Shown in pieces: positions 13,917 through 49,987 of a stretch of 64,000 nt of DNA. Below the pieces are notes generated by a model. That model saw only the letters and a program-made list of their open reading frames with translations, was not told where the DNA came from and ran no database searches. Numbering within the stretch: position 1 is the first letter of the stretch; every line of letters starts with the position of its first letter. Source of the stretch: Mantamonas sphyraenae STR306 (Eukaryota; Protista; CRuMs); NCBI GenBank assembly GCA_026936335.1, contig JAPMXV010000010.1, positions 62,001 through 126,000 of the forward strand. Reading direction: 5' to 3'. The position numbers were made by a program, and so were the translations under genes.

Positions 13917-16900
13917 ATGTTCACCCCGGCTGTCAAGGAGCGCACAGTGCACTCTGGCACCACCAGCAAGGGCACAAAAAAGTTCCGATACCAGTCGTTC
14001 AGCGAGCGCATCGGCGCGTTGAACATCGACGTCCTGCACAAGGTCGACGAATACCAGTTTGACTTGGACACAGGTGAGTTGTACTTCTCCCCCGTGGTTT
14101 GAATGCCATTCCAACCATGCATGGTTCCCATGGTCCCTCATGTGCGTGGCTACGGCCTCCCTTCCCTGCCCTGGGCTGACACGGATGCGTGTGGGCGGAT
14201 TTTGGCGACACATGCGACCAAGACTCGAACTTTGCGCACCACCTGGAAAACTGGCGGGAGCTGAACACCACCGCCCAGTTTGCAGACTTTTACCACCGAG
14301 TGCAGCCACTGTGCACGTCGCTGCCTCTGCTTCTGCATTCCAAGCACAAGGTCGTGGAAGCGCTGCTGGACGAGCTGCAGCCAACCGAACGCAACGGCGG
14401 ACGGGAGCCAGACCCGGCTGCCCTGCCTCCTGCCCTCAACCTCATCACCATGTTGGCACGCGACCTGCGCCACGAGTTCTACGAGTTCTTCCCGCAGTTC
14501 ATGACTTCCCTCCTGCAGCTGATGGACCCGCAGAACCCGACGCTGCTCGAACTCCTCTTCAGCTCCCTCCTATTTCTCTTCAAATACCTGGTCAAGGACC
14601 TTGTCAAGGACATCCCCATGCTTTTTGACGACCACTACAGCCATCTGCTTGCCCATCGCAAGGAATACGTCCGCCGTGTGGCTGCAGAGTCCCTTGCCTT
14701 TCTGCTGCGCAAACTTTCCACCTCTGCCCTCCAGGTGCAGCTCCTGCGCATGGTCACACACACACCCAAGAGCATCGGCAGCAGCAGTGGCAGCTCTGCA
14801 GGTGACGATGACGACGATGGAGACGAGCCCATGAGCGAACGAGCGCAAACGGCCCTCCGCGAGCAACTCGACGATGGCCTGGGCCACCTGCTGTTCCAGG
14901 TGGTGCGTGGTGTGCGCCACCGCCTGCATTCCAAGGCATCCACCATGCTTCCCTTTTATCTCGACGAGTGCCTGCAGTACGCACACGTCTCTGTACAAAA
15001 CGCCTTCAAGCATCTTGTGTCGCACGTCGACACAGACAATGCCGCCCACGTGTGGTCAGTCTTTCTCAAGAGCGTGGCCCAGCAACTGGATACCGATCCC
15101 ACCGCTGCTCACCTGCCGCATCTGCTCACCATCATCCGCCGATGGACACACTTCCACCACGGCGACCGCGTACACGACCCGACTACCCTCGACATCATCC
15201 TACAGTCGCTGGTACTGTCCAAACAACCGCTTCAAGCACACCCGCAAGCCATTTTGGACCTCTTTGCATCGTGCGTCCTGGTTCTCGGCTCCCGCCCCTT
15301 TGAGGCCTCCATGTCGGCGTACCTGAAAGCCATATTCAAGCTGCGCGACGCCTCCGATGCCGTCTTTGCCATGGCTGCACGCTTGGGCGAGCGCATCGAG
15401 CTCATGACGGACGCCTACGTGGCCCAGTTGCTCAAGTACGTCCAAACAGTGCTGACGCACGCCCATGACGACGCCCAGCAGCACATGCACGTGTTGTCAT
15501 TTCTTTCACAATGGCCTTACGCCAAAGCACGCGTGTCTGACGAGGTTCTCGCAGCCGTGCTGGCACCCCTGGAGGAGGCCTCCGAGTCGCCCCTCCATGT
15601 TCTCCACTTGGCTCTGGGTGCGCTGCAGAATCTGCATCTCGGTTCAAAGACCCTCAACAAGGTTGCACAAACGCACCTTTACCCGCTGCTGGATCGCATG
15701 CCAAACGACAGCCTGGAGAGCGCGTGCGTGCGTGCCCAGCTTGTGCGTGTGCTGTTGCAGGGCATGAGTGGCGAGCAGCTCGTGCAAGAAGCCATGGCAT
15801 GTGCAGACAGTCCCCACATGCTCACTGTGCTGGCTGACGAGTGTGTGCAACGCAACCTGGAGTTGGAGGACGAGGAATTGCGCGACGAGTTCACCGCGCG
15901 TGTGTTTGAACCCAACATGATGTCGCGCAACCACACCCTGCGTCTGCACACCCTGCGCATTTGGGCTTGTTTCACCCACCCGGCGTGGGCCAAGGACATG
16001 GCGCAGCTGATGGCCGAAATCGAGGAGATCGACCCGCTCAACCCCAACGAGATCCGCGAAAAGACGACACGCATGCGTACACTGGACACGTACATGCGCC
16101 CTTCCACCATGGACCAGAGTTACCGCGAACACTACCAGCGCTTCCTACAGGGCACGCTGTACGCCAAGCTGTCTCTGGTGCTGCCCGAGGTGGCGCTCTC
16201 CCTGCGCGATCTCGCAACCCTCGATTTCGACTCGTTCTGGCGTGTGTTTAGCCCGGTGCTCACCGAAGCGCTGTACAATGCGTCGCACGAGTCGCCCGAT
16301 GACGTGGAGGCAGCACTGTTGCAGGAGGCCCTGCAAGAGGCCGAAGGCGACGAGGTGCACGAAGCCTTTGTACGCCATGTGCACGACGTGCCGCCCCACC
16401 TCAACGCACACGATTATGCCGAAGCCATGTTGACCATTCTGGCAGAGATGGGCAACGCCGTGTACCCTGCCTCGACGGAACTCGCGCGCCTGTTCCTCTT
16501 TGCCCTGATGCCCGAGTATGCCTCCGTGTACCGAGACGAGCATCTGGGTGCTGACACAAGTGTGTTTGAAGCCCATCCAGAGCTGGAGGAGGAGTACGAG
16601 GCGGCCATGGCCAGCGACATCCGACCTGCGCCCTCGCGCAAGCAACTGCTGAACAAGCTGCGCCTCTTTCTGCGCATCTTTTCCAATCTGACCAAGCCAC
16701 GACGCATTGAACAGCCCGTGCGCGACGCACTGTACCACGTGTGTATGCGCTTCCTCATGAAGACGGAGGAATCAATCCAACAGCTTGCGCTGGAGGTGAT
16801 TCTGCGTTGGCAGAACGAATCGCACATGGCACACAAGGACCACCTGCGCAACCTTGTGCAACCCAAAAAGATGGCCGAAACACTGGTGCTGTTTTCCTTG

Positions 16901-19900
16901 GACGTGGATGCAGGTGTGGCCAACGTTCAGGAGCGACCCCACCTGCTGCCGCTTGTGTTTCGCATCCTGTTTGCACGACTGGTGTCGCGTCGAGGCAAGC
17001 GCAACCGCAGGGCCATTGCCACCTCGCGCAACAAGATTTTCACTTATTTCAGCAATTTCCAGCCTGAGGAGCTGCGCTACTTTGTCGACCTCATGCTGCA
17101 GCCGTTCCGCGAGTGCCTGGCACGTGTGGAGGAGACTGGCCAGCCCCCACTTCGTGCAGACACACGCAAGTTGCTCGGTGTCCTGCATTTCATCGAGGAC
17201 GTGGTCCGCCAGCTGGGCTCCCGCCTCAAGGCCTATCTCGGCGACTTTCTCGACGTCATTGTTGCCGCAACGCGCATGTCGCTCATCATCGACGAGCATG
17301 AGGCTTCCAAAGAGGCGGCCATGGAGGTGGATGACGAAGAGGAGGAGGAGGAGGACAAGCAGGATGATGATGAGGAGGAGGAAGAGGAGGAGGATGGAGG
17401 CCAGGGCGATGGTGACGACGATGACAATGAGCCTGCCGGCGATGTGGCTGCGTCGCTGAGACTGCCAGCCACAGGGAGACAGGCCAAGCAGATCCGCTCG
17501 CTTTGCTTGAAGCGGACAGCACAGATCATGCGCAAGTTCCCGCGTTGGGACTTTGACGAGGCGGCGACGGAGCTGCTCACAATGCAAGCAGAACGCATCC
17601 GTGCGATGCCGCTGCACAATGTGTACAACATGACGGGTCTGCTGGACTTTCTGCTGACGCTGAGCAACCACCGTGCACTCGTGCACCTTCTGGCGGTGCA
17701 GGAAGATGCGGTGCCCAGTGTGCTCCGCATGATTTCCGTGCCACACATCAACCCGTCCGTCCTCTCATCAGTCCTCTCCTTTGTAGAGAACCTTCTTGGA
17801 GCACACGACGACCACGAGGGTGTATATCACCGATACGACGCATCCTCATCGTCGTCCATGCAGGTGGACGGGGACGACAAAGGCGGCGACGACCAGGAAG
17901 CCAAGGTGGATGTGCTGGAACCGCACGTACAGGTGCTTCTGGAGCAGATGCAGCAGCTGGTGGAGCTGCATGCCATCGACCGCAAGGTGGACACAGAACA
18001 TCTTGCGTCGGAGGGAAAGAACACAGCCACGGCACTGGGCAAAACACACGGCAAGACTCAGATGGCACAGCAGATCGCAAAGGAAAAGAAGCATCTGCGT
18101 GCACAGAGTGGACGTGAACTGATCATTTTGTCGCAGGTGGCCAAATATGTCAACGACGGCGACCGTGCTCAGACGTTGTTGGATCTGTTGACACCGCATC
18201 TGCGAGACAAGCGCACACACAAAGCCCACGTGGTGAGCATCTTGGAGATTGTGGGCCAGCTTGTGCCCCTTCTGCACGATCCCATGACGTACTGGAGGAC
18301 CGTGAGTGCCCTGTACGCAACCCTTGGACCGCACAGCGCAGCACGCAAGGCGCTGGGCACGGCCATGCATGCGTTCTCCCTGGCCAACAAGGCGCTGAAG
18401 CCTGTGGCCGACGCCCTGTCGCTGTTGAATGCGTTTAGCAAACGGCGCTTGGACGAGTACGACTTTGACGCGCGAGCGCAGGGTTTCCAGCGTGTGATGG
18501 ATCTGATGCCATCGGCAGAGGCGGAACACCTGTGGCCCATCATTGCGTGCTACCAGGCCCTGTTGCAGGACGAGGATATGTCCATGCGCAACATGACGGC
18601 CAGTGCCTTTTTGGAGTTGATTGGATACGTGGGTGCCCATCCGCAGCAGCTCCCAGGTGTTCTCACCGGCCCCGTGTACTCGTGCATCAAGGAGGGGCTG
18701 CGGTCGCACAATGCCAGCCACCGCAAGGACTTTGTGCGCCTGCTGGCAGAGACGGTGCGACAGGAGGGAGGCGAGGCGTTCCCGGATTACCAGTGGCTGC
18801 TGGGCCATGGTGACGAGGAGCAAGACTTTCTCATGAACATTGTGCACATCCAATTGCACAGGCGCACGCGTGCTATGCTGCGCCTGCGACGCCGCATGGA
18901 GGAGGCACTGGAGGAAGGGGAGCATCCATTGGGTGCGGGCACGCTGGTCAACGTGGTGATCCCGCTGGTGAATCACGCGGTACACGAGGCCGGCGACGCT
19001 GACAACGACTTGTTTGAGGAGGGCACACGCACGCTGGGTGCACTGGCCAAACATCTGAGCTGGGGCCACTACTATCGCTTCCTTCGCACCAACATCAACC
19101 TGATCGAGAGCAAGCCCGAGATGGAAAAGCGCCTGATCCGCATTGTCACCAAATGGCTGGATGCGTTTCACTTTGAAGCTGCGGACGAAGAGAGCAGTGG
19201 CCACCGCGCGCTGGTGGGCTTTGTGCTGCCAGCCCTGGACAAGCTGCTTGTGGAGGTAAAGAGCACGGAGCGACGGGGCAAGGACAGCACAAAGGTGATT
19301 TCCAGGCACAGCATCCGCGTGCCCGTGGCCCTTGCGGTCGTCAAGGTGCTGCACCTGCTCCCGGAGGCGGTGATGAAAAAGAACCTGCCCCGGCTGGTGA
19401 TGAAGATGGCCTTGCTGTTGCGCTCGCGCGAGCAAACAACACGCGACAGCACACGCAACACACTCGTGCGTGTGTTGCAGGAAACAGGCGTCTCGTACCT
19501 GCGCTTCATGCTGGAGGAGCTGAAGGGCACGCTGACGCGAGGGTACCAGGTACACGTGCTGGCCTACACGCTGTTTTCCATCCTGGAAGCCATGGTGCCA
19601 CGTGCGCAGTGCGGTGACCTCGACTATTGCCTGGACATCATGCTGGAAATCATGCTGCGAGACATGGTGGGGCTTGTGGCTGCTGAAAAGAAGGAGGACA
19701 AGGTGTACGCTGGGATGCGCGAGACCAAGGCCACCCGCTCCTTGGACTCCTTCCAGCTGTTGGCCAGTGTGGTTGACTTCAAATCCAGCGTGGTGGCTCT
19801 GGTGGAACCTGTGCAGCGGCTGATGTACGACACCACCAGCCGCGAGATGGCTCGTACGTTGCAGGAGATGCTGCGCCACTTGGGCATTGGCATCCTGGCA

Positions 19901-22321
19901 AACAAGAGCGCCAATGTGGACGACGTCCTCCTGTTTGTGTTTGCCCTGCTGCAGGACAACCGGCCCCTGTGTGTGCCGCCGCCAAAGAAGGACCGTGGCA
20001 AGCGCCGAGGCGACGGGGCGTCGACGCCGCGCGAGACGTCGCACATGACGGAGAAGCTCCTGGTGGACGAAAAGGCGGCGGAACGAGAGGCAGCCGCCAA
20101 GGCCATGCGCAACAGTCATTTCAAAGCAAACGCACACTTGTTGGTGGAGTTTGCGTTGAATCTGCTGCACACCTTGGCCAAACGGGGACGTGTTCATCGC
20201 GGCAAGAAGGAACACGCACAACTGTTGGATCCGTTTGTGGAAGAGGTGTTGGCAGGCATGAAGCTGAAGTACGCAGAGTGCAGGGTGCAGGCACTCAAGG
20301 CTGTGGGTGCCCTGGTGCAGTTTGACCTGCCCAGCATGCATTCGCACATGCCCGCCGTTCTCAAGCAAGTGCTGCGTTTGATTGAGAGCGCAGGTTCCAT
20401 GGAGTCGGACCTTGCGCAGGCGTCGCTCAAGTGCCTGACTGTGTTGTTGCGCGACTGTCCCTACGCCGAGCTCAGCGATGCGCAGCTGCGCGCCCTGGTG
20501 CACATGCTCTCGCTGGAGCTGGAACCGTCCAAGGCGCTGGCCAGCGTATTGACCCTGGTGCGTGCACTGGTTGGACGACGCTTTGTGTGCCCGGAGATGT
20601 ACGACTTGGCGACTCTGGTGGGCAAACTCATGGTCACCAGCATGCTGGAGCAGGTGCGAGGCCTCTCATCCACCATCTTCCTCAACTTTCTGCTGGACTA
20701 TCCGCTGGGTACCAAGCGGCTGACCCAACACATGGAATTCCTGATGAAGAACCTGGCGTACAAACGCCCCAGCGGCAGGCTGGCTGTGCTGTCACTGCTG
20801 GCTTCCATGTGCACCCAGTTCCCCGAGGCCGTGTTGGATGAGCGAGCCCCAATGATGTTTCTGCCGCTGGTCATGCGTGTGGCTGTGGACGAAGACGCAC
20901 GCTGTCGCCAAGAGGCCGGCGGCGTTTTGCGCAAGCTGCTCGCTCATGTGGGCGACAAGACATTCCGCCAGCTCATGTCCATGGCTGTCCAGTGGATGTC
21001 CAGTGGCATGGATGGCATGCAAGAAGACGAGGAGGATGCGAGCAGCAGCGCAGGGAGCCGGGAAACGCGAAAAGAGGCGCAACTGCGTCGTCTGGGCGCA
21101 CAGGTGTTGAGCATCAGCCTGGAGGTGCGCGAGGGCATGGTGCGAGCTGAGATGATGGACACGGTGCTGCCCTTGTTGACCAACATGTTGGACATGCGCG
21201 ACTGGCAGCCTGTGTACCATGCACTGAAGGTGTTGGAGAAGCTGTGCGCCAGCGAACGGGCCCTTCTGTTTGACTCGCGACTGGACACGCTGTGGAGCTC
21301 GTTGCCTGCCCTTCTGGTCCATCCGAACCAATGGATCCGAGCGGTGGCTTGCCGCGTGTTGGGCTTGCTGTTTGCGGCGTTGCCTGCGTCGCTGGTGGAC
21401 ACCCACGAGTCGCCCTTGGAACCCGAGGACCTGTGGCTGTACAAAGAGAACAAGCTGTACGAAGTGGCATGGTGCCTGTGTGCCCAGCTGCTGGATAAGG
21501 CACAGCCGGACGAGGCCACCGGCGACCAGCTCGTGCGCAACCTGCTCTATGTGTGTCGCTTGGCCACACACCACGTCCAGTTGGCTGTGGATCCGGAACA
21601 CGCAACCAAGCACGACGACGATGAGGACGACGAGGACGCCGCTGCGGACTCGCTCATCCTTCGCCAAGACCAGGTCTTGCATCTCGGCGTACCTGGTGCA
21701 ACTGGAGGCAGGAACGAGCACAGGAACAGTGACAGCGACAGTGACGTTGACGAGGAGGAGCAGGAGCAGGAGCAGGAGGACAGCGATGCCCCGGCGATCG
21801 TCATTCCAGAGGTGAATCCGCTTCTGCGTTTTGTGTTTCATCGATTGTCCAAATCCAGCGCGCAACTCAATGCCCAAGGCCAAGTGCTCGTGTTCAAACT
21901 TTTCGCTGGCGCGTGCATGCAGCTGGGCGAACAGGTGCGTCCGTATCTGCTGCTGATCATGCAACCGTTGTACAAGGCCACCGAGAGGGGCGAGGATGAA
22001 CGGTTTGCCACTGCATCGGAAATGGCGCAGCAGGTGCTGGACCTCCTCCGCGACTCTATGGGCACACGACTGTATGTACATGTGTACAACCGTGTGCACA
22101 GCAAGGTGCGCGAGCGACGGGAGGACCGCAAGCGTCGCCTGGCGGTGAAAAAGATTGTCGATCCCGAAGGCGATCAGAAGCGACGCAGGGTCAAAGCGGA
22201 GCGCAAGAAAGCAAGCCGCAAACGCAAGGTGCAACAGTGGAAGGCTGTCAAGGAGGGAGTGGCACAAGCCAGCAGTAGCAGCAGCAGCAGTAGCAGCGGT
22301 GGTGGGAGGAGGAGGAGGTGA
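13917..22321 (+). CDS. UTP20: U3 snoRNP / SSU processome HEAT-repeat protein UTP20; intron starts at 14074
   Basis: N-terminal KFRYQSFSERI..LNID, LENWRELN, LTRGYQVHVL, FLLDYPLG..L..H..F...NL.Y...SGR and a basic C-terminus; about 2,750 aa. Confidence 0.92.
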
Positions 22322-22332
22322 CCAAAATGTGT

Positions 22333-25031
22333 TCATTTTCCCCAGTTTCGCATCTCATCCTTGACGAAATCAAACGAGTCTGTCGTTTTGCTCTTGTTGG
22401 TGGACAGGCCAAACGATCCGCCGCCACTGGACGCGATGCCGTTGTCCTGTTGAGGGGCGGTGGAAAAGGCTTGGCCGACGCGAATGCCACCCGAACCCAG
22501 CGCAGCGTAGTTTGGAGAGGCATTGCCCGTCTGCTGCTGCTGTTGCACATGCGAGTTGGTGAACAGGATGCTTCCGCCACCGCTTCCGCCGGAGTTCATG
22601 GGCGACAGGCCGAACGAGTTGCCGCTCGGTTGCATGGTGCCTCCACCTCCGCCGCCCATGCCCAGACCGAATGCATTGCTTCCTCCTCCCTGCTGTTGTT
22701 GTTGCTGCTGCTGTCCCTGTGTATATGTACCGTTTCCTCCACTGCCGCCGTTGTTGCTGCCGGTCGTAAAGTCGGACGAGTTGAGCGCAGCCAGGACGGC
22801 GTTCTTTCCGCCTCCACCCATGCCACCTCCACCATTGCCTCCACCTCCACCTCCGCCCAGATCCAAACCGAACAGACCTCCCATGCCACCGTTGTTCTGC
22901 TGCTGCTGCTGCTGTTGCTGCTCTTCCTGTCCGTCTCCGCCCATGCTCAGGCCTCCAAACAGACCTGGGCCACCGCTACCACCGCCACCTCCTTGCTGCT
23001 GTTGCTGCTGCTGCTGCCCTTGCTCGTCTCCACCCATGCTGAGACCACCAAAGAGACCCGGTCCGCCTCCGCCTCCGCTTCCGCCTGCGTTGCCGCTTGT
23101 GTTGACACCCAACGAGGACAAGTCGTCATCTTCCTCCTCCTCGTTGCCGAATCCAATGTCGACGAGTCCTCCTCCGTCACCGCCGCCCCTGGACGAGTTG
23201 CCACGGCTCGATCGGCGTTCGCTGGCGCGCATCTGATTGCGCGACACCCGCTTGCTGCCGCTGCCCTTGCTGCTCTTGCCTTCGTACTCATCGGGGAACA
23301 CGCGTGCCATGACCTTGAGGGCCAGATTCTTGACCACGGTCTGTTCGGCCTCCACCAGCTGCTCCACAGCCTCGGGCTGGTCCGCCAGGTAGTCCAGGTA
23401 GTGTTCACTGAGTTTGGAGCTCTTGGTCAGTGCATCCAGAACGTACAGGGCACGGTAGCGCACCTGCCACGTCTCGTCCTCAAGTTTTTCGCACAACAGC
23501 GATGCCATGATGTCCACATCCAGGGTCTCGCACCGACCCACAAAGGTCTGTGTATCCTCTCGAGGTGGTGCTGCACGCACACCCGACGGCGTGGTGATCT
23601 CCTCCACCAGCCGTGCCTCGTACTCTCCCGGATCACTGCGCATTGCAGGCCTGCTTGGCGTCGTCTGCCCACCGAAGGAGTTGCGTCCCGAGGATCCTCC
23701 ACGCGACTGCGTCTGTCCTCCTCCTCCTCCTCCACCTCCTCCACCTCCACCTCCAAAGCCAGTGCGACTGTTGCCCGAAGCGCTGCGTGACCCCAACGAG
23801 CCGCTGCCGCTGTCGTTGCCTCCACTCGAGCCCCATGAACCTCCCACAGTGCCCTTCTGGCGTGTGTTTTGGGCTGAAAAGCCGCCGCTGCGTGCGGTGT
23901 TTGTTTCGGTGGTGTTGCTGACGCCGCGGAAGCCGTCGTAGTTGCGCTGTTGCTGTTCACGCTGCATGCGTGCCTCCTTCATCGTGTTGCCACTACCTGC
24001 CACGCTGTTCACCTTGTCCTTGGCCGATGATAGCATGTTGGACACTTTGTCCACAATGTCCTCGCTGCTGTTCTGGGCGCGCTGTTGGGCGAATTTCGGG
24101 TTGCCAAACCCGCCGTACTTGCTCCCTGTGTTGGCAAAGCCTCCACCACTCACACCCATCGACTGCCCTCCGTTGTTGCCTCCTCCGTACGATGTTGACG
24201 ACGACGTGTTGCCCAACGACGACGTGCTTCCCGAGCCCCAGCCTCCGCCGACGCTGCTCCGGTGCTGCCCTGCTGGCTGGTGCCCGTCGACCCAAAGCCC
24301 TGCATGCGGCTCGATGTGCTGGTGCTCTCCTCTCGCTCGATGTTCGAGTCAAACAACATGTTCATCAGCGTCTGTGTGTGCGTGTCGTGTCAGCTGTGGG
24401 ACCCTGTGTGTCGCGTGCGGGGCCAAAGAGGGGAAAGCCCACTCACCTGCGCTTCAGTTCGGATCTGCTTGTTGATCTCGTCCCCATGGAACTGGTCTTC
24501 CGTGCCCTTGAACGCTGTGGGCACCCAACCACACGTGCATGTCAGTACTGCCCCGTCCGTGGCACCTCCATCTCTCTGTGGCCGGCCGCAGGCCCACGAA
24601 AACGGGCCGCGTTTGCAAAGGAAATGGACACGCGCGTGTGTTTCGTTCTTCAACGCCCACCGCCGCAGGCAGCCTGCACAGATGGACTGGCATCATCCAA
24701 CCACACGCAAGCGGTTGCACACACGTTTGCCCATGTGACACTTACACACGCATTCCTTGATGAGGTCGGTGCGCTGCTGCATATCCGACTGAAAGTCTGG
24801 CGAGCCCTTGCTGACGCAGTGCTGCATCACCTTGAGTGTCTTGAGCTTGACCCAAGCCTGATCCTTGGCCAAGCGTTTGAGCAGAAAGTCCTGCAGTTCC
24901 TGGTTTGCCTGCATGCTCTTGGTGGTGATGGCTGCGATGTCCTTGAACATGTACCCGGGCGTGCTGTTCTCGTCGTTCGACGTGGCCTTGGCCACAAGTG
25001 TCTTGTCGATGGAGTAGATGAAGCGCGACAT
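22333..25031 (-). CDS. TEPSIN: Tepsin-like AP-4 accessory protein (ENTH + VHS-like domains, Gly/Gln-rich tail); multi-exon, 1-nt indel near 24260
   Basis: KATSNDENSTPGYMFKDIA...VKLKTLK, a second domain YEARLVEEITTPSGVRAAP, and C-terminal DSFDFVKDEM. Confidence 0.78.
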
Positions 25032-25234
25032 GCTTGTTCGCCTCGTGTGGGGGTGTCTATGTGGTGCCGGGGTGTTTTGGGTTGGGTTGCGGAGGTTGGC
25101 GCGACTCATGCTCCTGCTGAGTGTGTGAGGGGTGGGTTGTGTGTGTGGTGTGGGGAGGGGGTTGGAGGGAAGGAGGGGAAGCGGTGATGGCGGTGGTGAT
25201 GATGAAGGGTGAATTGCTGGCGACCGCAGAGATA

Positions 25235-25256
25235 CAGTGAATTCGAAGCAAACTGA
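25235..25256 (+). repeat. Left imperfect terminal inverted repeat of element 1
   Basis: TA|CAGTG start typical of Tc1/mariner; pairs with 32352-32373. Confidence 0.65.
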
Positions 25257-25694
25257 AATTGGCCTCATTCGGGCAAGATAGACTCATTTGTCAAAGTAAG
25301 GGGTGCCAGAGTAGCAACACGTAATGAACAAATGCATCCTGTGCACAACTACAATGCCTGTCTGAGGCATTGGCTGCCGCATCTCATCGTCCCGTTTGCT
25401 GGTGGTATTTCACCACCGCGTTTCCACATGTCCACTCACCACGCCACCATCCTTGTGGACATGCCGATATGATTCAATTCTCCAGCAGCTCGTTGACGGA
25501 GCGCAAGGCTCTTCTTGCCACTCCGGATGATCAGCATGGCAGTGTTTGGACAAATTCCCTCCAATCGTCCAACGGCGTCGTGGAAGAGAGTCGTGACGAG
25601 ATTCAAGCAATGCACCATTGTCTGTGGCGAGGTTGGCGTGCGCAAGGGTAACAACTTCCCCTCAACATCCAAGTGCGACATGTGAGGCACAACA

Positions 25695-26694
25695 ATGTTT
25701 CGAGAGTGGAAAACCAACGCAAACGGTGGTGCATACTACCTGGGAATGGAGTACAGCGAGCGCGAACGGCGCAATGTGCTGCATACGAAGAATCTCAACC
25801 CGTGCTGGACTTTGGAAGAGGTGGCACAGCATTGCAGCGTGTCGCGATCGTCCGTGTGTTGCTTCCTCCGCAACGGCCCCACGGCCAAGAAGCGAGGCGG
25901 TGCGCGAGGTCCCCGAAAGATAGGAACGACGGAAGAAGATCTTTTGCGTACTGGGTTTGATGCTGACCCTTTGCTGAGTTTGGATCAACTGCGGGGCCTG
26001 CTCGCAGATGTGGGAGTGTCCGTTGCAAAGTCGACGATTTGCGCCGCACTCAAACGCATGCAGTATAGTCGCAAACAGGCCAAGACTATTCCTACGGAGC
26101 GATTCAAGGAAGTAAACATGCAGCGGTTGGAGACGCACATGGAACGCATGCAGAACGACCCGTTGCTGGCAGCCAAATCATCGTCTTTGTGGACGAGTGT
26201 GGTGTGGACCGCAGGGCCATGCAGCGTCGCTTTGGGTACTCCCGCATAGGATCGGAGTGCGTGGTGAAGCGCATGTGAGTGAGAACGGGTCGAATGGCTG
26301 GGGCGAATGGCTGCTTTGTTCGGGCTCTGTCGTGCTCACACTGCTGTGTATGCGCACACGCGCGCTGATCAGCTACAACCGGGGAAAGAATCACAGTGTG
26401 CTTTCAGCGATAGGAATGGAAGGACTGATCCAAAGCGAGGTGCAGAGCATGCCGTACAAGAGCGCGACGTTCACAGAGTTTATGATGCGGCTGCTTCAGG
26501 ACCAGAGACGCATGCGCACAGTCGTGCTGGACAATGCAAGCATCCACAAACAGGCAGCAAAGCAGATCGAACGAATGGGTCACACGTGTGTCTTCCTACC
26601 AGCGTATTGTCCGTTCCTGAATCACATCGATGCGACGCAGTTCATGGGGTATTGGATGGTGCGCCACAACGCTCAAGAGAAAAGTGTACCATGA
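25695..26694 (+). pseudogene. IS630/Tc1-mariner DDE transposase, likely degenerate: frameshift near 26175, intron 26275-26372, apparent C-terminal internal deletion
   Basis: HTH region (MEYSERER...VSRSSV...VSVAKSTICAALKRMQYSRK), then IVFVDECG, RGKNHSVLSAI, VVLDNASIHK and FLPAYCPFLNHID. Confidence 0.85.
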
Positions 26695-29600
26695 GCCAGC
26701 GCAACATGGAATACAACCGTACACGAAAACGTGGCCACAGCGACATCATGGTTGACAACGACGATGACGCGGCTCTGCAGCTGGAGATGAGCGGTGCGGA
26801 CCAAAAGCGGTCGCGGTGGCACAAATGCGATTCCCGCCGATGCGGAAACGATGTACAGTTGAAGAATAGATTCTGTAGTGCGTGTGTGCTGCGTGTAAAA
26901 GACCAGGTGGTCGAACTGGGCGAGGAGGAGGATGCGGTCGGCGGACGGAGGCGCGACCGAGGTGTTGGCAGCGTCCACATGTTTCAGGAGGCCATCGAGG
27001 CGGAGGCAGACGATGCAATGGACGAGGACTGGGAGGAAGGTGGGGATCAGATGTACATGGATGAGGCCAGTGTCCTTGGGAATGCGGTGTGGCGCGACGA
27101 AGAAGAAGTGAGGGAGGCTGTGAAAATGCACGGAAGGTATAGCCACAAAACGCAGCCCGTAGAGCTTCAAACGGGACGACAGGGCGGATCAGGGAAAGCA
27201 AAACGACAGAGGGATATCATGTCTATGCTTGGCATCGAGTTCCACGAGGAATTACTGACTCCCACAGGATTGGTGGTCGTATTTGTGGATGTTTCGGCAG
27301 TCTGCTACTCAGCACTGGAGAGCGCGTGTCGTACGACGGATTTGAACAAGCAGCAGGTGCGCGAGTTGGTAAAGCGGTGCATTGAGATGGAAATGGCAAA
27401 CACAGAGCTGCGGATCGACGTGAGAGATGCCAAGAAAGCCGGCAAGCTCCGTTTTGCCCTGTGCTGTGACATCAAGCCAGAGATCGCTGTGGAGGAGGCC
27501 AGATCCATCAGCTATGGGACCCACCTCCGGCGAATTGAGGGCACCCTGGTGCATGTTCAGGCGATGCAGCGACTGCGGCGCGAAATTGCTCAGGAGAAAC
27601 GAGGACGGCCAGCCGGGCCCCTGTCTGCAGACCGACTCGGCCAAGAGCGCCGACTCTGCCTTACAGGAGAGGCTCACATGGCCATGTACCACGCTACAAA
27701 GCATCTGTGCTCGGAGCATGAGGAGCTCATCTTCGGGAACGAGATTGCGGGGTTGGCACAACAGGCCGTGCTTGCAGACCATGTCAAGGATGCCGTGATG
27801 CAGACCTACGCGGAGGAGGACGACGACATCAGTTTCATCATCGCTGTCCACCGGGACAGTGACTGGGCGTATTCTCAAACCACACATCCCGTATTCCTGA
27901 TCCACGACACGCTGGGCACAGCGATGGTGGACGGAATGGACAACCAAGTCATGAGTTTGTCGGCTGCCATTCTGCTTTCCAGCGACATCCAAGCCAGTGT
28001 ACGACCACCACGTCGCAGTGCATTGAACTTGGATAGGGCGTCGCTGGAGCAGCTGCTCGACGACGGAGATCTGCTCACGCACGTGTACGCTCCCATTGTC
28101 GAAAACGACCTATCCATCGCTCACCTCCTGCGTGGCACGTCTGGAAAGCAACCAGCATCGAAACACAGGCTCCTTCTCCAGGAGCACGCTCTCCGCTACC
28201 TTCCGTGGGTTGCGCTGCATATGCAGGTGCTTGGGTTTGAGGACAGCGACATTGCGCGTATCACGTCCCTCCATGCGTGGGGGCGTGTGTTCGATGGGGC
28301 CGTGAAGGACGTGGTTGTTGAGGAGACCTTGCCAGAGGCCAACGTCATCGGCACCGTGCATTTTGACGACGGTGGTGGTGTCACGTCGCTGTTGGATGCG
28401 TTTGTGGCGCAGTTTGCAGTCGAGTCTGACCCAGAGATGTCAACAGCTCATGTACTTCCCGCTGGTGAGGTTTGCCGGCGAGGAAGAGCACTCAAACACA
28501 GTGAAACACTGCAGGATCAACTGCTTGAGCTCAGCGAACAGACGCAGCTACGCTGGGCGAACCAGACCGATCATCGCTCCCCCCACGTCGACTTTGCAGA
28601 CATCGACCACAAAGATCGACACCAGTTCAAGGTAACGGTCGACACAAGCGCCGCGGGCGTCGAGGGGCTTGTTGCGGCGGCGCAGGCGAATGACCACCCT
28701 CCCGTATACACAAACCCATCGGATCTGTTCAACAACATGATCACCGGGAAGAGCTGGACGAGTCTCTGCACACAATGCCTACCCAAGGGCAAGCTGCGCA
28801 AGTCAATTGCGTCGCAACGCGGAGTGATCGGAGTCGATCTGCGCCGAGCGCTTTCCAAACAGCATCGCCTCGTCGCTGCGCTGAAGGAAATGGACATTGA
28901 CACGACCAGGAACTTCTTCGTGGGTACCAACGAAGATCTCGCATCCATCCTTGGTTCCACACCCCCCTCGGCAGAAGAGGCGGAGGTGTGGAAACACAAC
29001 GCCGGCGCAGCAATCGACCGTGTGTTCCAGCTGCAAGGCGACGGAGACGGAGACGGAGACGGAGACGGAGACGGAGACGGAGACGGGGGCTTGCTGTCCT
29101 TGGATCACGTCATTGACACCATCCTTCCTGACAAAGAGGAAGGAGCGGCTGACAATTGGCGTGTGTTTCTTGGCTTGTCCACACCGAACCTCAACGAAGG
29201 GTATGCAGAGCGCCTGGCCTCCTCATCATGCATTTTAGAACTGGGGGCTCTGTCCACTCTCCGCAACCAAGCCCTCGTCACTGAGGATGACGTCGAACAG
29301 CTGCGACGGGTCCAGGCAGTGTTCGGGTATCTCGTTGCAATTCAGCAAGACTTGCTTGAGTGCGGCCAGATTGAACCACACACAAAGGTGGAACGTCTGT
29401 TGGCAAACAGTTGCGTCTGCGAAGAAGGGCGCCTGTACCTGAAGGCACCAGAGGGCCTGGGCGTGGTTTGCGCAGCACATTGCACACAAAACGGTCTGAT
29501 TGCCGCCAACACAGATCTCATACTGCGAAAGAAGCAAGACGGAGGCATTGAGGCTGAGTATCTAGATGGATTGGAGGAGACGGTGGAGAGGGAGGCCATG

Positions 29601-32216
29601 CGGTTGGACATCCTCCCGAAGGGCATGTTTTCGACCTTGTGCAAGCGAGCTGCCGCTCATGTGGTGACAAGCTGGAGGGTAATGCTTACCTCACAGGCCA
29701 ACACGAACCTGATTGACCTGGTTCGAGCTGCTTCCCCGGAACTGGCACACACAGACCTTGCCGCGTTTGTGAATCGCGAACTGGACACCAACGACAGCGC
29801 AGATGGCTACGGCGTCGCCACAGACGCGAAGACGCGCCGGGCATGCAAACGGGCTGTTGAGGATGTGCTGCTGCAGGTGTGCAACGTCTCGTTCAAGGAG
29901 TTCCGCTCGCTCCAGGGCGAGGACACAAAACGCAAGGTCGCCGCCCTCCAGTGCTTTTTCAAGCTCGGTAAGGCCTGCAACTCGACCCGCAAACTCTACG
30001 GGGACAAAAGTTCTTTCCACATCCAGCTGGCCGCCGAACGAGAACGTATCTTCGGGAGCTGGGCCGCTCAAACCATCGCCCGGAATCTCTCGCTGATTTG
30101 CGAGGTACGGGAGGACGAGATGGACAGCAAGCTTGCATGGTCTATCCTCTGTGCTGCATCAACATCCACCCCTGGGGTTTTGGATGGTCCTCCGTCGGAG
30201 GTTTGTCGGCACCGCGCCAAGAGTTGCCAATGTGTTGTGCATCGATGGGTGCGGCAAGTCCAGGTAGCTCGCAATGAGGCTCATGTTCATTCCATGCGTG
30301 CCTCGCTGGCTTGGCACATGATGAATCACGAGGAAGACCTGGTTCAAAGCAGCAGTAGCAGCGGTGGTGGCGGTGGTGGCGGCGACGGTGATGGCGGCGA
30401 CGGATGCGCCCGCAGGCCTCTTTTTTCCTCGACATCGGTTGAGGGTATGCGCATGTGTGCACAGACATGTGCAAACCAAACAGCGCGCATGATCACGTAC
30501 GCTGAAGGCGCGCGTATTCCGGATGACGAGCTGGGTGCGTTTGCTGGTGCGCTCTTGTTCGCGGCGTTCAACCTGTTTGACGTCCTCTCGCCCACACATG
30601 CGCCCCGCTTGGCAAAGACACCCTTCCTCAACGATGGCTTTCTGTCCGTACGCTTGTTCAGCAGCGTGCACATGGCACATGCGCGGCATTGGACAATCCC
30701 TGCTGGCCCCCAACAGCGGCGCTTGTACATGCTAGAGCACCTTCTCGTTCCCGACGAGCGCTTATCCCTGTTTCCAACCCTGAAAGCGTGCATCAACTTG
30801 CTCCGGAATCCCACGGCGACGTCCTGTGACGACACGAAGGACATCGAGGACGCTGACCTCCTCAAGTTTCTTCAAGGTGACTTCTCACTGCTGGAAGATG
30901 CGCCACAGCCCAGGCCTGCTCTTTCTGCGCCTTTTGTGACCCATCCGATTGCGCGATACAACTACTCTGCGGTTGGCAAGGCGGCGCTCCGTGCGACTAG
31001 CGGAAGAGACCCCGGTGCCCACACCCAGGAGCAGCGCAACACGAGACGGCTGATCGACCGTATCGCAGCCGTAGCCATCAGATTGTGCCAGGTGGGTGTG
31101 CTGGTGGCCTCGCACGAGAGTCTGCGGAAGCGGGGGGACGGAAATGGTGGTGGTGAGCTGGCGGCCGACGACGAAACTAAGGCTGTGCACGCATTGCTCC
31201 GTAAATGGCTTCCGCGCTCTGCTGCAAAGCTCATTGCCGTGGGATTGTGCCCAAGGCACCTGGAATCCAGGCGGCCGCATGGAGTGATCCCCTCCTTTTC
31301 GCGGATCCTCCCTCTGAGCCAAGAGGCCAATATGCGACTGCAATTCATTGGAATGGATCCGGGTATGGCGAACGCGCCGTCAGCTCTTGTTGTCCCCCTT
31401 CCAGAGACCGTCCGGGATGGCAACTTGCTGCAATTTGCAACCGCGTACCGCTTCTCGCCACCGTCGCTCGGCGCATTGCTACGCAAGACTGGGATCAAGA
31501 AAGAAAGTGCTCTGCTCTCAAGTAGGGTGCGTGAACGGATGCAGGAGCTGCGCGTGAAAAGAGCAGGACTGTTTGCCGAGAGGCATTCGGAGGCGAGGGT
31601 GGGACGCACGCTGCGCCATCAGTGCAGGGCGGCCTTGACGGTTGAAGAAGCTTCATCAGCTGTCAGTCAGGAGGAGGACAGCCAAAGTGGAGACAGAAAG
31701 ACGCATCATCCACGGGAACAGAAGAGCAGGATTCGAAAGATGCGCGAGCACTGGCTTGCGCAGGTGCGTGCGACCGAGAAGATGCAGTTGGAGAAGGGGC
31801 AACTGCGACGCATCACACTGCTGTGCATTGGTGACGGATACAAGGGTGGCCGTGGTGGTGTGCAGAAACTCGAAGATCTTGCCAAGCACAACATGCTCGT
31901 TGTGCGTGTAAATGAGTGTAACACAACGCTGCGATGCCCCACATGTGGCAGTGTGCACGAGAGCAAGCACGGGAGTGCACGCACTGCGCGTGTCAAGTAC
32001 TGTAAGCGATGCAAAATGCACCGGAACCGGGACTTTGCCAGCGCACAAGCAATCGCAAACAAGGTGTACGCTGCCCTTCGCGGCCACACCATATGGTGCA
32101 TGACCAAGGTTTGGCAACGGAGTCAGATCGGCAGGGCGTTCAGAAGCAAGATTGGTCTGCCAGAGAACGTGGACGGCGAAGCAAAGAACTTGGAGGCGAA
32201 TTCGAGCGCCGGCTGA
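26691..32216 (+). CDS. Giant Fanzor/TnpB-like RNA-guided endonuclease, ~1,841 aa (Fz-A)
   Basis: RuvC-I FIGMDPG (D at 31356), LCIGDG, RuvC-II VNECNTT (E at 31914), zinc ribbon CPTC...CKRC, RuvC-III NRDFASAQAI (D at 32031). The ORF is uninterrupted. Confidence 0.88.
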   Translation: MSQRNMEYNRTRKRGHSDIMVDNDDDAALQLEMSGADQKRSRWHKCDSRRCGNDVQLKNRFCSACVLRVKDQVVELGEEEDAVGGRRRDRGVGSVHMFQEAIEAEADDAMDEDWEEGGDQMYMDEASVLGNAVWRDEEEVREAVKMHGRYSHKTQPVELQTGRQGGSGKAKRQRDIMSMLGIEFHEELLTPTGLVVVFVDVSAVCYSALESACRTTDLNKQQVRELVKRCIEMEMANTELRIDVRDAKKAGKLRFALCCDIKPEIAVEEARSISYGTHLRRIEGTLVHVQAMQRLRREIAQEKRGRPAGPLSADRLGQERRLCLTGEAHMAMYHATKHLCSEHEELIFGNEIAGLAQQAVLADHVKDAVMQTYAEEDDDISFIIAVHRDSDWAYSQTTHPVFLIHDTLGTAMVDGMDNQVMSLSAAILLSSDIQASVRPPRRSALNLDRASLEQLLDDGDLLTHVYAPIVENDLSIAHLLRGTSGKQPASKHRLLLQEHALRYLPWVALHMQVLGFEDSDIARITSLHAWGRVFDGAVKDVVVEETLPEANVIGTVHFDDGGGVTSLLDAFVAQFAVESDPEMSTAHVLPAGEVCRRGRALKHSETLQDQLLELSEQTQLRWANQTDHRSPHVDFADIDHKDRHQFKVTVDTSAAGVEGLVAAAQANDHPPVYTNPSDLFNNMITGKSWTSLCTQCLPKGKLRKSIASQRGVIGVDLRRALSKQHRLVAALKEMDIDTTRNFFVGTNEDLASILGSTPPSAEEAEVWKHNAGAAIDRVFQLQGDGDGDGDGDGDGDGDGGLLSLDHVIDTILPDKEEGAADNWRVFLGLSTPNLNEGYAERLASSSCILELGALSTLRNQALVTEDDVEQLRRVQAVFGYLVAIQQDLLECGQIEPHTKVERLLANSCVCEEGRLYLKAPEGLGVVCAAHCTQNGLIAANTDLILRKKQDGGIEAEYLDGLEETVEREAMRLDILPKGMFSTLCKRAAAHVVTSWRVMLTSQANTNLIDLVRAASPELAHTDLAAFVNRELDTNDSADGYGVATDAKTRRACKRAVEDVLLQVCNVSFKEFRSLQGEDTKRKVAALQCFFKLGKACNSTRKLYGDKSSFHIQLAAERERIFGSWAAQTIARNLSLICEVREDEMDSKLAWSILCAASTSTPGVLDGPPSEVCRHRAKSCQCVVHRWVRQVQVARNEAHVHSMRASLAWHMMNHEEDLVQSSSSSGGGGGGGDGDGGDGCARRPLFSSTSVEGMRMCAQTCANQTARMITYAEGARIPDDELGAFAGALLFAAFNLFDVLSPTHAPRLAKTPFLNDGFLSVRLFSSVHMAHARHWTIPAGPQQRRLYMLEHLLVPDERLSLFPTLKACINLLRNPTATSCDDTKDIEDADLLKFLQGDFSLLEDAPQPRPALSAPFVTHPIARYNYSAVGKAALRATSGRDPGAHTQEQRNTRRLIDRIAAVAIRLCQVGVLVASHESLRKRGDGNGGGELAADDETKAVHALLRKWLPRSAAKLIAVGLCPRHLESRRPHGVIPSFSRILPLSQEANMRLQFIGMDPGMANAPSALVVPLPETVRDGNLLQFATAYRFSPPSLGALLRKTGIKKESALLSSRVRERMQELRVKRAGLFAERHSEARVGRTLRHQCRAALTVEEASSAVSQEEDSQSGDRKTHHPREQKSRIRKMREHWLAQVRATEKMQLEKGQLRRITLLCIGDGYKGGRGGVQKLEDLAKHNMLVVRVNECNTTLRCPTCGSVHESKHGSARTARVKYCKRCKMHRNRDFASAQAIANKVYAALRGHTIWCMTKVWQRSQIGRAFRSKIGLPENVDGEAKNLEANSSAG
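29039..29085 (+). repeat. (GACGGA)n hexamer repeat encoding poly-GD inside Fz-A
   Basis: Seen directly; about 7 in-frame copies. Confidence 0.9.
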
Positions 32217-32395
32217 GGACGGGGCGCCAGAACCGTCAAACAACCAACCAACCAACCAAACATTGGGTGTATTATGCCACCTAGCACAGGGTTGTAATGA
32301 TGTAAGTTTTCCTTTTCCAGCACCGAGACCAAACCCTTTGCGCGAGCTGACTCAATTTGGCTCGAACAGCCTGTAAGGAAACACTTCTCGCGATG
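32217..32395 (+). ncRNA. Candidate omegaRNA of Fz-A (scaffold to ~32373 plus a flank-derived guide)
   Basis: Lies between the Fanzor stop and the right TIR. Stems at 32264-69/32278-83, 32284-93/32332-41 and 32343-48/32359-64. Confidence 0.55.
32352..32373 (-). repeat. Right imperfect terminal inverted repeat of element 1
   Basis: Ends in CCTG|TA; 15/22 match to the left TIR. Confidence 0.65.
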
Positions 32396-39122: not shown

Positions 39123-41784
39123 ATGAAAACCTGGCTTCTGCTGGGAATGCTGCTTGCAGCATCCTGTGTTGTGGTGGCCACATCGGACGACTCCTCGGAT
39201 GTGTCCGACACCGATCGCGCGGTGTGAGTGTTGGCGTGTGTGTGGAACCCACCACCCGTTTTGCAGCACTGCCCTTTTTTTCGTCTTTTGCACCTTGCTG
39301 ACCGACGCAAATGTCCTCAACACAGGGTGCAACTGCTCCAAGCACACGCGCAACAAGTCCAAGAAGGCGTTTGTAAGTGGAGAGTACACGCAGAGTGTTG
39401 TGTCCACACAAGAGCGACGAAAATGTCCCACAAACTCACACGAAATTTGGGACGACAATCTGCAGCGCTCCCGATGCAGGAGGAAAGCGAAGCGAGCGAA
39501 GAGGTCAGCGGCTCGGACAGCGACGAGACTGACGCAAACGCAGACGAAGCCTCGGAGCAGGAGAACAACGACAGCAGCAGCTCGGATGACGAGCAGGTTG
39601 CCGATTTCTGGGGTTCCTCTGCCGGCCGACGCCGCTACATCCCGCGTCGTACATACAGGTACAGGCCCCGTCGCACATACAGGCCCCGTCGTACATACAG
39701 GGCACCTCGTCGCACGTACAGGCCCCGTCGTCGCACGTACACCCCGCGTCGTCGCACGTACACCCCTCGTCGTCGCACGTACACCCCGCGTCGTCGCACG
39801 TACACCCCGCGTCGTCGTACATACACCCCGCGTCGTCGTACATACACCCCGCGTCGTCGTACATACACCCCGCGTCGTCGTACGTACACCCCGCGTCGTC
39901 GCACGTACACCCCTCGTCGTCGCACGTACACCCCTCGTCGTCGCACGACCACCCCGCGTCGTCGCACGTACACCCCGCGTCGTCGCACGTACACCCCGCG
40001 TCGTCGCACCTCGACGACCAAGAGGAGCTCGCTGTGGGGCCGCAAGAGCAGCACCACGCGTCGTCCCTCCACACGCAAGACAACTCGTCGCACCTCGACG
40101 ACCAAGAGGAGTTCGCTGTGGGGCCGCAAGAGCAGCACCACGCGTCGTCCCTCCACACGCAAGACAACTCGTCGCACCTCGACGACCAAGAGGAGTTCGC
40201 TGTGGGGCCGCAAGAGCAGCACCACGCGTCGTCCCTCTACGCGTAAGACAACTCGTCGCACCTCGACGACCAAGAAGAGCTCTCTGTGGGGCCGCAAGAG
40301 CGGATCCAGCAGGAAGTCTTCGTCTTCGACCAAGAAGAGCTCTCTGTGGGGCCGCAAGAGCGGATCCAGCAGGAAGTCTTCGTCTTCGACCAAGAAGAGC
40401 TCGCTGTGGGGCCGCAAGAGCGGATCCAGCAGGAAATCTTCGTCGTCGACCAAGAAGAGCTCGCTGTGGGGCCGCAAGAGCGGATCCAGCAAGAAGTCTT
40501 CGTCTTCGACCAAGAAGGGTGGCCTTTGGGGCCGCAAGAGCGGATCCAGCAAGAAGTCTTCGTCTTCGACCAAGAAGAGCTCGCTGTGGGGCCGCAAGAG
40601 CGGTTCGAAGAAGGACAGCAAGAGCGGCAAGAAGGGCGGCCTTTGGGGTCGCAAGAGCGGTTCGAAGAAGGACAGCAAGAGCGGCAAGAAGGGCGGCCTT
40701 TGGGGTCGCAAGGACAAGAAGGACGGAAAGAACGGCAAGAAGAGCGGCAAGAAGGGCGGGCTTCTGGGGTCGCAAGGACAAGAAGGATGACAAGAAGGAC
40801 GGCAAGAAGAGCGGCAAGAAGGGTGGCTTCTGGGGTCGCAAGGACAAGAAGGATGACAAGAAGGACGGCAAGAAGAACGGCAAGAAGGGCGGCTTCTGGG
40901 GCAACAAAGACGACAAGAAGGGTGGCGATGACCGTCGCCCGGGACAAGATGGCCCCCCTGGCCAAGATGGACCTGGTGGTGAGGGTGGAGACGGCGGAGG
41001 CATTGGTGGCTTGCTGGAGAAGCTCGGTGGCATGTTTGGCGGCGGAGGCGGTGGTGAAGGAGGAGGAGGCGGTGGTGAACCCCCTCAGCAGCCGGAGCCC
41101 CCTCAACAGCCGGAGCCCCCTCAACAACCGGAGCCCCCTCAACAACCGGAGCCCCCTCAACAGCCGCAGCCCGAGCCTGAGCCCCCTCAACAGCCGCAGC
41201 CCGAGCCTGAGCCCGAGCCTGAGCCTGAGAAGCCGCAGGATGACAGCAACACGGATTACACCAAGCTGGAGCCGATCATCCCGAACACATTTGGCACCAA
41301 GGCCCTCTCGCAGGCGGGTCTCCGGCGCAGGATGGGCGACCCGGGACCTCTGACCCAGGATTGCGCAAACAGCCGCATGAACAACCAAAAGCTGATCAGC
41401 AAGATGGTTGATGTGAGCATTGGACATCTGTCCTTCACCGGAGCCAAGCCGTTCACCGACCGCCTGCTGCGTGGTCTGGAGGAGGTGCGTGAACGCTATC
41501 CGGCACTCTTCCAACAGCTCAGCTCCGCTGGTCTGGTCTGCATGCGTGCCGTGCGTGGCTCCACAACCGCCTTTAGCACCCATGCGTTTGGTGCCGCCGT
41601 CGATTTTAAGATCAACGGCAAGCTTGACCCGCGCCGCGACGCCAAGGCCCAGCACGGTCTCAACCTGATGGCGCCCATTTTCGCTCGCCAAGGTCTCCAC
41701 TGGGGAGGTTGGTACTCGCCGCAGTACGAGGACGCCATGCACTTTGAGCTGTCCAACCAGTACGCCGGTGAGCTCGCCGCGTAA
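39123..41784 (+). CDS. Secreted Arg/Lys-rich repeat protein with a C-terminal peptidase M15 (D-Ala-D-Ala carboxypeptidase / L-Ala-D-Glu peptidase-like) domain; intron 39222-39479, 1-nt indel near 40759
   Basis: Signal peptide MKTWLLLGMLLAASCVVVA, acidic pro-segment, tandem repeats, then R..RGS....STHAFGAAVD...GLHWGGWY...DAMHFEL. Confidence 0.82.
39640..41225 (+). repeat. Coding tandem arrays: 21-bp (TYTPRRR), 81-bp x3, 60-bp x5, WGRK units, 18-bp PQQPEP
   Basis: Seen directly in DNA and translation. Confidence 0.92.
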
Positions 41785-48039: not shown

Positions 48040-48349
48040 TGTTGTTGGATTGCGTTGGCTCCAACGGGGTTTCATCCTGCGTGCGCACACCACATCTGCC
48101 CCTACTCCATCCACGACCCACATCTACCATGTCTGCTATGTCCACGCTTTTCGCTTTATGCTTGATATGTACACCTCGTCCTCCCAACACTCTCGCCGTC
48201 GACGCCACTCGTTCACCACGCACTCATCTGCGGGCCTACGCGTGTCTAGGTCCTCACAGACGCACACACTCACTCACACGCACGCGTGCGCCCAAGTGAA
48301 ATGCTGCTGCCACTGCTGCCACGCTGTTTGGCTGGGCCACCCTCGTCGT

Positions 48350-49688: not shown

Positions 49689-49987
49689 GGTTGGGGGTGT
49701 CGCTCGAGCGCAAAAGAGGGAAACTTTTTGGGTTGTTCGGGCTCTCGCGCACGTCTCCACCCACATCCATACCCAGTGCAAGAGCACAGACATCCATTCT
49801 GCACAGAGGGTAGGGTGGGATGAGAGGGGACACAAGGTGGGATGGGCGGCTGGAATGAGGGTGATGGCGGTGCTGGGGGAGGGTGAAAGAGCGGGTTGGT
49901 GAGGAAAAGAGGCGAGACGAGAAGGAAGCGGCGGATGCGCGCGACGGGAGGCAGTGCAAACACACCAACCAACCAAGACAGGTAACA

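Follow-up and report, generated by a model that had tools for sequence, protein, structure and literature searches.

A 64,000-nucleotide stretch of the Mantamonas sphyraenae STR306 genome (contig JAPMXV010000010.1, positions 62,001 to 126,000 of the forward strand; hereafter the window) contains a transposon-borne gene for a giant Fanzor-like protein, and this locus raises the question of what the long N-terminal part of the protein is and whether it works together with the RNA-guided nuclease to which it is joined. The analysis points to a nuclease that most likely belongs to Fanzor1 and is preceded, in the same reading frame, by a domain predicted to adopt a FEN1/XPG-family 5'-nuclease fold. 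The gene is present in 13 full-length copies of six subfamilies, with 36-98% amino acid (aa) identity, in a 25-Mb assembly with spliceosomal-type introns; the window has a GC content of 59%.

Giant frame, its copies and host transposon

The element is laid out as follows, in window coordinates with the strand in brackets.

25233-25234 (+): left TA target-site duplication (TSD); TA followed by CAG starts 13 of 13 copies
25235-32373 (+): complete Tc1/IS630-type element of 7,139 bp; similarity to sister copies begins and ends here
25695-26694 (+): broken IS630/Tc1 transposase; Pfam HTH_32 and DDE_3 on separate pieces
26691-32216 (+): giant open reading frame (ORF) of 1,841 aa, predicted 5'-nuclease-fold/Fanzor1 fusion
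26691-27191 (+): aa 1-167, basic patches like a nuclear localisation signal (NLS), CCCC zinc knuckle (26826-26885) and acidic tract; weak constraint
27192-28247 (+): aa 168-519, predicted FEN1/XPG/EXO1/XRN-like 5'-nuclease fold, from fold search and conservation
28248-29216 (+): aa 520-842, linker and helical region, family-conserved by substitution rates; mostly low pLDDT (predicted local distance difference test) score
29217-30668 (+): aa 843-1326, predicted expanded WED-REC-WED recognition lobe of Fanzor1 type, from fold match
30669-31340 (+): aa 1327-1550, stretch joining WED to RuvC-I, conserved by substitution rates; low pLDDT
31341-32213 (+): aa 1551-1841, RuvC (D1556, G1714, E1742, D1781) and TNB zinc ribbon, from motifs and Pfam
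32264-32375 (+): candidate omega-RNA scaffold, a small hairpin and then an ACAGG/CCTGT-closed stem taking in the right terminal inverted repeat (TIR) and TA; compensatory changes
32374-32375 (+): right TA target-site duplication; 12 of 13 copies end with CTG followed by TA
32376-32395 (+): predicted guide in the right flank, different in every copy; position by analogy with Fanzor1 (PMC10711439)

Translation of 26691-32216 gives one uninterrupted frame, and the probability of an equally long frame arising randomly at the local composition is ~1e-30. Upstream the frame stays open to 26283, making 1,977 codons from stop to stop, and a start at 26307 would yield 1,969 aa. This start was rejected, since the additional codons run over the transposase remnant in a different frame and are partly lacking in a 97%-identical sister copy, and since the alignment of subfamilies converges on the Met at 26691, the start given in an earlier sequence-only reading of this DNA. 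That reading had also named the motifs GMDPG, IGDG and NRD, a zinc ribbon and an N-terminal zinc knuckle, all of which were located in the translation: DPG at aa 1556, GDG at aa 1714, E1742, a C4 zinc ribbon at aa 1749-1774, D1781, and the knuckle C-x4-C-x10-C-x2-C at aa 46-65, whose four Cys are present in all six subfamilies. E1742 precedes C1749 by six spacer residues. The proposed TnpB/Fanzor RuvC layout, with the Glu relocated beside the ribbon, agrees with published motif patterns and with a Pfam Cas12f1-like_TNB match above the cut-off, while aa 1551-1841 have weak sequence matches to Cas12f and a mimivirus Fanzor2. The D-E-D triad is retained in 13 of 13 copies.

The genome-wide survey of copies and of the ratio of nonsynonymous to synonymous substitution rates (dN/dS) that the sequence-only reading had called for revealed purifying selection that takes in the N-terminal part. 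Besides the full-length copies there are one 29%-identical relative and one 3' fragment. From the family ATG to the end the frame is open in 11 of the 13, the other two being frameshifted within the first 150 codons, and in none do stops or frameshifts separate the 5'-nuclease and Fanzor parts. The flanking DNA differs in all 13, which occupy unrelated sites, so that the family has moved, partly recently. In comparisons between subfamilies dN/dS lies at 0.15-0.4 with the N-terminal part included, amounting to 0.20-0.30 across aa 155-1500 and to ~0.2 in RuvC; by region it is 0.4-0.75 for aa 1-167, about 0.3-0.67 for aa 520-842 and 0.12-0.3 for aa 1327-1550, and constraint is relaxed only in aa 1-154 and in portions of aa 666-800. 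The six subfamilies are grouped identically by trees of aa 168-519 and of aa 844-1362, and in the 29%-identical relative (L015/L016, C52:258704-263550) the aa 168-519 domain is in frame with the Fanzor part (E 1e-15). Taken together, the dN/dS values, the congruent trees and the in-frame domain in a distant relative indicate that the N-terminal part is an old, selected component of the protein. The relative also contains a long acidic repeat in mid-protein and a frameshift past the RuvC-II glycine motif.

These data leave very little room for the explanation that expression is limited to a short 3' ORF and that the N-terminal part is a passenger or a gene captured separately. Low-complexity linkers (near aa 785-800 and 1220-1240) would suit it, but the parts are unbroken in every copy, are under purifying selection throughout and share congruent trees; and with WED starting at aa ~843, a product of 290 aa would be unable to take up a Fanzor fold.

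The 3' end behaves differently from the remainder of the gene, DNA identity between subfamilies being ~53% in the N-terminal part versus 88-92% at aa 1681-1841, and one copy (L004) diverges from its twin (L003) only within this segment. An RNA constraint was considered for the low synonymous divergence of aa 1681-1841 and was dropped, since that divergence pattern largely vanishes in comparison with copy L013; exchange of 3' ends between subfamilies is the likelier explanation.

The host element has imperfect TIRs of ~20 bp and TA duplications, as in the IS630-Tc1-mariner group, and its own transposase, by which the DD(34)E motif would be judged, is a broken remnant. The damaged neighbouring transposase noticed in the sequence-only reading is thus real: besides the helix-turn-helix and DDE_3 matches it has a frameshift near 26175-26179 and a likely intron at 26275-26372 and is cut short at the third catalytic residue; its stop is overlapped by the Fanzor ATG. 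Eleven of the 13 copies have no transposase, nine of these being ~5.8 kb long, and 17 intact-looking DDE_3 frames lie elsewhere in the genome. The element is regarded as a mostly non-autonomous Tc1/IS630 transposon with a single-protein cargo. Among the 13 insertion sites A stands two bases before TA in eight and directly after TA in ten, and G directly before TA in none; each preference has p < 0.001 against the TA sites of the window, uncorrected, and the preference is asymmetric. An intact 340-aa IS630/Tc1 transposase lies ~45 bp beyond the left end of copy L003, on the opposite strand (L003:7204-8223, +), and is possibly a nested insertion. The right flank of copy L007 reads TA-CTG-TA (L007:7110-7116), resembling the footprint of a Tc1 excision or else an end that was duplicated.

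Fanzor part and N-terminal domain

Two AlphaFold2 models were built from family alignments, covering aa 800-1841 and aa 155-1240, with mean pLDDT of 54 and 58. The aa 843-1326 segment of the first matches the WED/REC lobe of SpuFz1 (Z 8.6, root-mean-square deviation (rmsd) 5.9, 278 residues aligned) and that of PpFz1 (Z 7.1), ahead of TnpB and Fanzor2 (5.9). A wide fold search placed GtFz1 (Z 6.1), TnpB and Fanzor2 at ranks 1-3, and seven of its ten top rows are Fanzor, TnpB or Cas12f; the second model again matches GtFz1 from aa 844. Language-model features (Atlas) of aa 840-1841 score 0.97 to TNB-domain clusters of 625-804 aa from giant viruses and eukaryotes. The models thus suggest a Fanzor part of ~1,000 aa that begins with WED/REC at aa ~843, and not the last ~290 aa to which the sequence-only reading had limited it. 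Of the ~1,500 N-terminal residues that were left unassigned there, aa 168-519 and 843-1326 now have a predicted fold, and aa 520-842 and 1327-1550 stay unassigned.

The Fanzor pattern D-x(125-275)-[TS][TS]-x2-C4 zinc finger-x(5-50)-RD of Bao and Jurka 2013 is present, D1556 lying 188 residues before TT 1745-1746 and the RD at 1780-1781. The pattern of Yoon 2023, in which RuvC-I has DPG and an alternative Glu precedes the zinc finger by six residues, occurs in 13 of 13 copies, at a DPG-to-Glu spacing of 183 that exceeds the published 120-160. The protein is moreover carried by a eukaryotic DNA transposon and has a WED/REC lobe in the model. It probably belongs to Fanzor1, with which the non-IS607 host, the enlarged REC, the fold scores (Fz1 Z 8.6-6.1 versus Fz2 5.9) and the terminal stem agree, while the TDG motif is kept only loosely.

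The aa 168-519 segment matched 5'-nucleases at all of ranks 1-17 among 48,161 chains searched with VIA-align (Z 10.4-6.6, rmsd 4.0-7.3, 200-301 residues aligned). The Z scores are 10.4 for T4 RNase H, 9.9 for XRN1, 9.2 for EXO1, 8.6 for T5, 8.3 for XPG and GEN1 and 7.2 for FEN1. Foldseek in PDB, viral and atlas libraries agrees on this fold, all searches using the same model. Pfam and PDB sequence searches did not detect the domain (no match to the XPG_I hidden Markov model), and only the fold search finds it. It is therefore predicted, with the confidence that the model allows, that aa 168-519 adopt a FEN1/XPG-family 5'-nuclease fold with a PIN core, a helical arch insertion and a C-terminal helical domain. 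The expanded Fanzor with extra domains anticipated by the sequence-only reading is in this way borne out by the single ORF, by purifying selection along its length and by the modelled fold. The basic patches of aa 1-167 may serve as an NLS.

Five aspartates, D200, D260, D389, D391 and D432, occur unchanged in 13 of 13 copies. In the model D200 follows S1, D260 follows S2, D389 follows S4, D391 precedes H5 and D432 lies at the end of the following helix; Asp after S1, S2 and S4 and before H5 is the FEN-like pattern (PMC5499597). Such conservation argues for selected metal binding. The helix-4 acidic pair is altered, and the mapping of this motif is supported by a second, very distant giant Fanzor-like gene of the window (52735-58390, minus strand), which, by eye, has its motifs in the same order and keeps EAE intact. 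The two Asp/Glu/Gln before helix 4 that belong to a seven-carboxylate FEN-like site were not recovered, and the domain is for this reason classed as FEN-like by its fold and is not counted among the canonical active members. The missing helix-4 glutamate argues for weak or no catalysis; judged from these residues, the odds that the domain is catalytically active are put a little above even.

Proposed homing reading and its alternatives

The region after the stop codon is 142-169 bases long across copies and contains conserved paired elements: the small hairpin shows a G-C to A-U change, and the pair of ACAGG with the terminal CCTGT becomes ACAGC/GCTGT in the most distant full copy. A strong fold, with a long terminal stem, is seen only in copy L010 (z -7.2), and the right end of the window copy folds no better than shuffles (z -0.4). 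Rfam gave no match for the scaffold. A pseudoknot of ACAGG/CCTGT was also considered and was given up for a nested stem at the terminus; a terminal stem of this kind, with TIR and TA included, is in keeping with Fanzor1 RNAs (PMC10711439). An omega-RNA that is expressed and guides DNA cleavage is thus a candidate suggested by these paired elements. The TA at 25233-25234 would also form the final two bases of the predicted target-adjacent motif (TAM), here GATA.

The preferred reading, given a probability of about 0.4, is restorative homing (the model of PMC13565253) by a Fanzor1 with a tethered 5'-nuclease domain that trims the cut 5' ends. A transcript through the right end would supply the omega-RNA, with the flanking DNA as guide, and WED/REC would read a TAM ending in TA, for which the insertion sites suggest RHTA. 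RuvC would then cut the element-free allele, giving 5' overhangs like those produced by SpuFz1 (PMC11423790), and the tethered domain would trim, or grip, the cut 5' ends, favouring homologous repair from the element-bearing copy. The element would thereby be restored following excision by a transposase acting in trans. Of this picture the element's anatomy, the selection and the joint descent of both parts are shown by the data, the two folds are model predictions, and each catalytic step is inferred. Engineered T5-exonuclease-Cas12f fusions give better editing and more deletion (PMC12337685). The homing reading is supported by the fold matches, the five invariant Asp across 36-55%-identical lineages, the congruent trees and the copy-specific guides, and further by the EAE of the second giant family.

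Several points weigh against it. The WED/REC Z values are middling, although the fold family that they single out is the one expected from the RuvC motifs, and both models are of modest confidence; the Foldseek E-values for the 5'-nuclease fold are all > 0.001. The RuvC lobe folded poorly, so that the RuvC assignment rests on motifs and Pfam, and modelling of the C-terminus, the check proposed in the sequence-only reading, bore out the Fanzor1 match for WED/REC and fell short for RuvC. The helix-4 pair reads E327-A-H329 in the window copy and Q-A-Q, K-A-Q or Q-A-H in other subfamilies: position 327 is E in two of the 13 copies (the window copy included), K in two and Q in nine, and position 329 is H in four, Q in nine and an acid in none. 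By motif reading position 329 is equivalent to Xrn1 E178, and Xrn1 E178Q is inactive (PMC8850482). Finally, a break is already made by DDE excision itself, so that homing would bring less advantage (PMC13565253).

The altered pair also carries the strongest alternative, in which the homing nuclease is the same and the domain is a pseudo-enzyme gripping the single-/double-strand junction of the R-loop or of the cut end. The helix-4 carboxylate that is lost here is described as nearly invariant among PIN-like nucleases (PMC5499597), position 327 varies between E, K and Q, and no Lys/Arg could be clearly assigned in the helical arch, which has low pLDDT. Yet the five Asp are invariant, four acidic residues can suffice, and the FEN-like pattern allows Gln at both positions (PMC5499597). 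A domain that only grips is accordingly held to be somewhat unlikely.

The domain could instead act on RNA, either by XRN/RNase H-like 5'-3' trimming of the 5.7-kb transcript to omega-RNA or by clearing R-loop RNA after the cut. The scores of XRN1 (Z 9.9) and T4 RNase H (Z 10.4) are on a par with those of the DNA-specific members, viral XRN-like proteins stand high in the fold ranking, and the RNA scaffold sits in the 3' end of the mRNA. However, no such domain is needed by ordinary Fanzors to obtain their RNA, and fold scores less than 1 Z unit apart say nothing on substrate; an RNA role is considered improbable.

Less probable still is that the protein mainly acts on other targets (competing elements, viruses or host loci) or as an RNA-guided binder, and not in homing. 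Within 25 Mb the genome has giant Fanzor-like loci from several families, at least 46 in all (the other families recorded by coordinates only), and the 3' ends are much more alike between subfamilies than the remainder, both of which would suit such a role; but among the element loci compared there is no fixed guide and no guide match, and the RuvC triad is intact.

For the tethered nuclease, a wider form of the homing reading is also conceivable, and is held somewhat more tentatively than the reading itself: at least some giant Fanzor families here may be natural two-nuclease RNA-guided effectors, in which Fanzor would cut, the built-in 5'-nuclease would resect and repair would be steered to homologous copying. 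These would be the first effectors of the TnpB/Cas12 lineage with their own end-processing enzyme, the window family having a rearranged site.

Other loci and comparison with known systems

The second giant gene of the window was searched exon by exon.

58390-57581 (-): exon 1
57580-57520 (-): intron
57519-52838 (-): exon 2

By eye, exon 2 contains FEN1-type motifs with EAE and DSD, and RuvC-I is DTG; the right end has the same ACAGG/CCTGT stem, and a left end was not found. When the two families were compared by profile, the sole match was a weak one in RuvC-II/TNB (E 0.004), and the nuclease domain had none. Further giant frames (24 loci and 8 more) of 1,175-2,087 aa have Fanzor-like C-termini, and for five giant frames (on C2, C11 and C57, and two on C44) a DDE_3 transposase that looks intact lies 5-7 kb upstream in the same orientation, which makes these five loci candidate autonomous elements.

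Host genes of the window are an ENTH-domain gene at 24693-25030 (-), whose start is ~200 bp from the left end of the element, and UTP20 at 14189-22321 (+). A near-identical duplication of ~4 kb (4933-8900 and 48050-52000, 43.1 kb apart), with PP2A-like and ribosomal-protein-like exons by eye, is either real or an assembly artefact. An 876-codon frame with tandem repeats at 39154-41784 (+) has a C-terminal match (E 8e-10) to Peptidase_M15_4, a bacterial/phage-type domain, here in a eukaryote.

Homologs of the giant protein were sought outside the genome. No homolog was found by a protein homology search limited by length window and shared words, by scans of metagenome and viral contigs, or by Atlas language-model features of aa 155-1450, and a profile of aa 155-1240 gave 0 matches to 1.84 billion representatives. 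Literature term searches that included Fanzor surveys, with subscription papers partly covered, found engineered fusions only and no natural Fanzor/TnpB fusion to a FEN-like domain.

Known Fanzor1 proteins (SpuFz1, GtFz1, PpFz1; the Mariner-borne SPu-1, PUl-1 and ROr-1) share with the window protein the DPG of RuvC-I, Gly at the canonical RuvC-II position, the relocated Glu, the C4 ribbon and RD, together with the WED/REC fold, a TA-flanked Tc1/mariner host and a terminal RNA stem taking in the TSD. In contrast, their 600-800 aa (up to about 800 aa in characterised members, PMC10711439) compare with a ~1,000-aa core here, to which 840 N-terminal residues with the predicted 5'-nuclease fold and the zinc knuckle are added; the WED motif is NDG, NGE or NAG instead of TDG, and significant sequence similarity is confined to the TNB region.

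Size by itself is not new. The sequence-only reading had placed the protein beyond typical Fanzors, but multi-exon predicted Fanzor1 of 1,699, 1,756 and 1,827 aa from Polysphondylium were listed by Bao and Jurka in 2013 (PMC3627910). The large Fanzor1 proteins predicted from Polysphondylium and Mucor (PPa-1, -4, -7; MCi-2) have comparable listed lengths of 1,135-1,827 aa, and are multi-exon predictions in Sola2/MuDR/Crypton-like or unclassified elements; for PPa-1, supplement 3 gives a sequence that falls short of the listed length. No report of a nuclease domain in them was found, and no FEN1-type motif series was seen by eye in the portions inspected. The novelty would thus lie in the predicted fusion of a Fanzor with a 5'-nuclease fold.

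With the FEN1/XPG/EXO1/XRN1/T4 RNase H/T5 D15 superfamily, aa 168-519 share the predicted fold over 216-300 residues and the Asp after S1, S2 and S4 and before H5, plus a fifth Asp; they differ in the replaced E-x-E/D pair of helix 4, the lack of a PDB sequence match and the RNA-guided nuclease partner. The occurrence of canonical and non-canonical 5'-nuclease sites within one genome offers a ready comparison.

Excision by cut-and-paste DDE transposons already leaves a break, so that their retention of Fanzors calls for an explanation; with an end-processing domain on its Fanzor, the element may itself control the choice of repair pathway. A parallel is exoCasMINI, a T5-exonuclease-Cas12f protein (PMC12337685) in which a 5'-nuclease is likewise joined to a TnpB-family RuvC nuclease. 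That fusion is artificial, whereas the one in the window is natural, transposon-borne and under selection, and would be a natural counterpart to the exonuclease-Cas12 fusions engineered for larger deletions.

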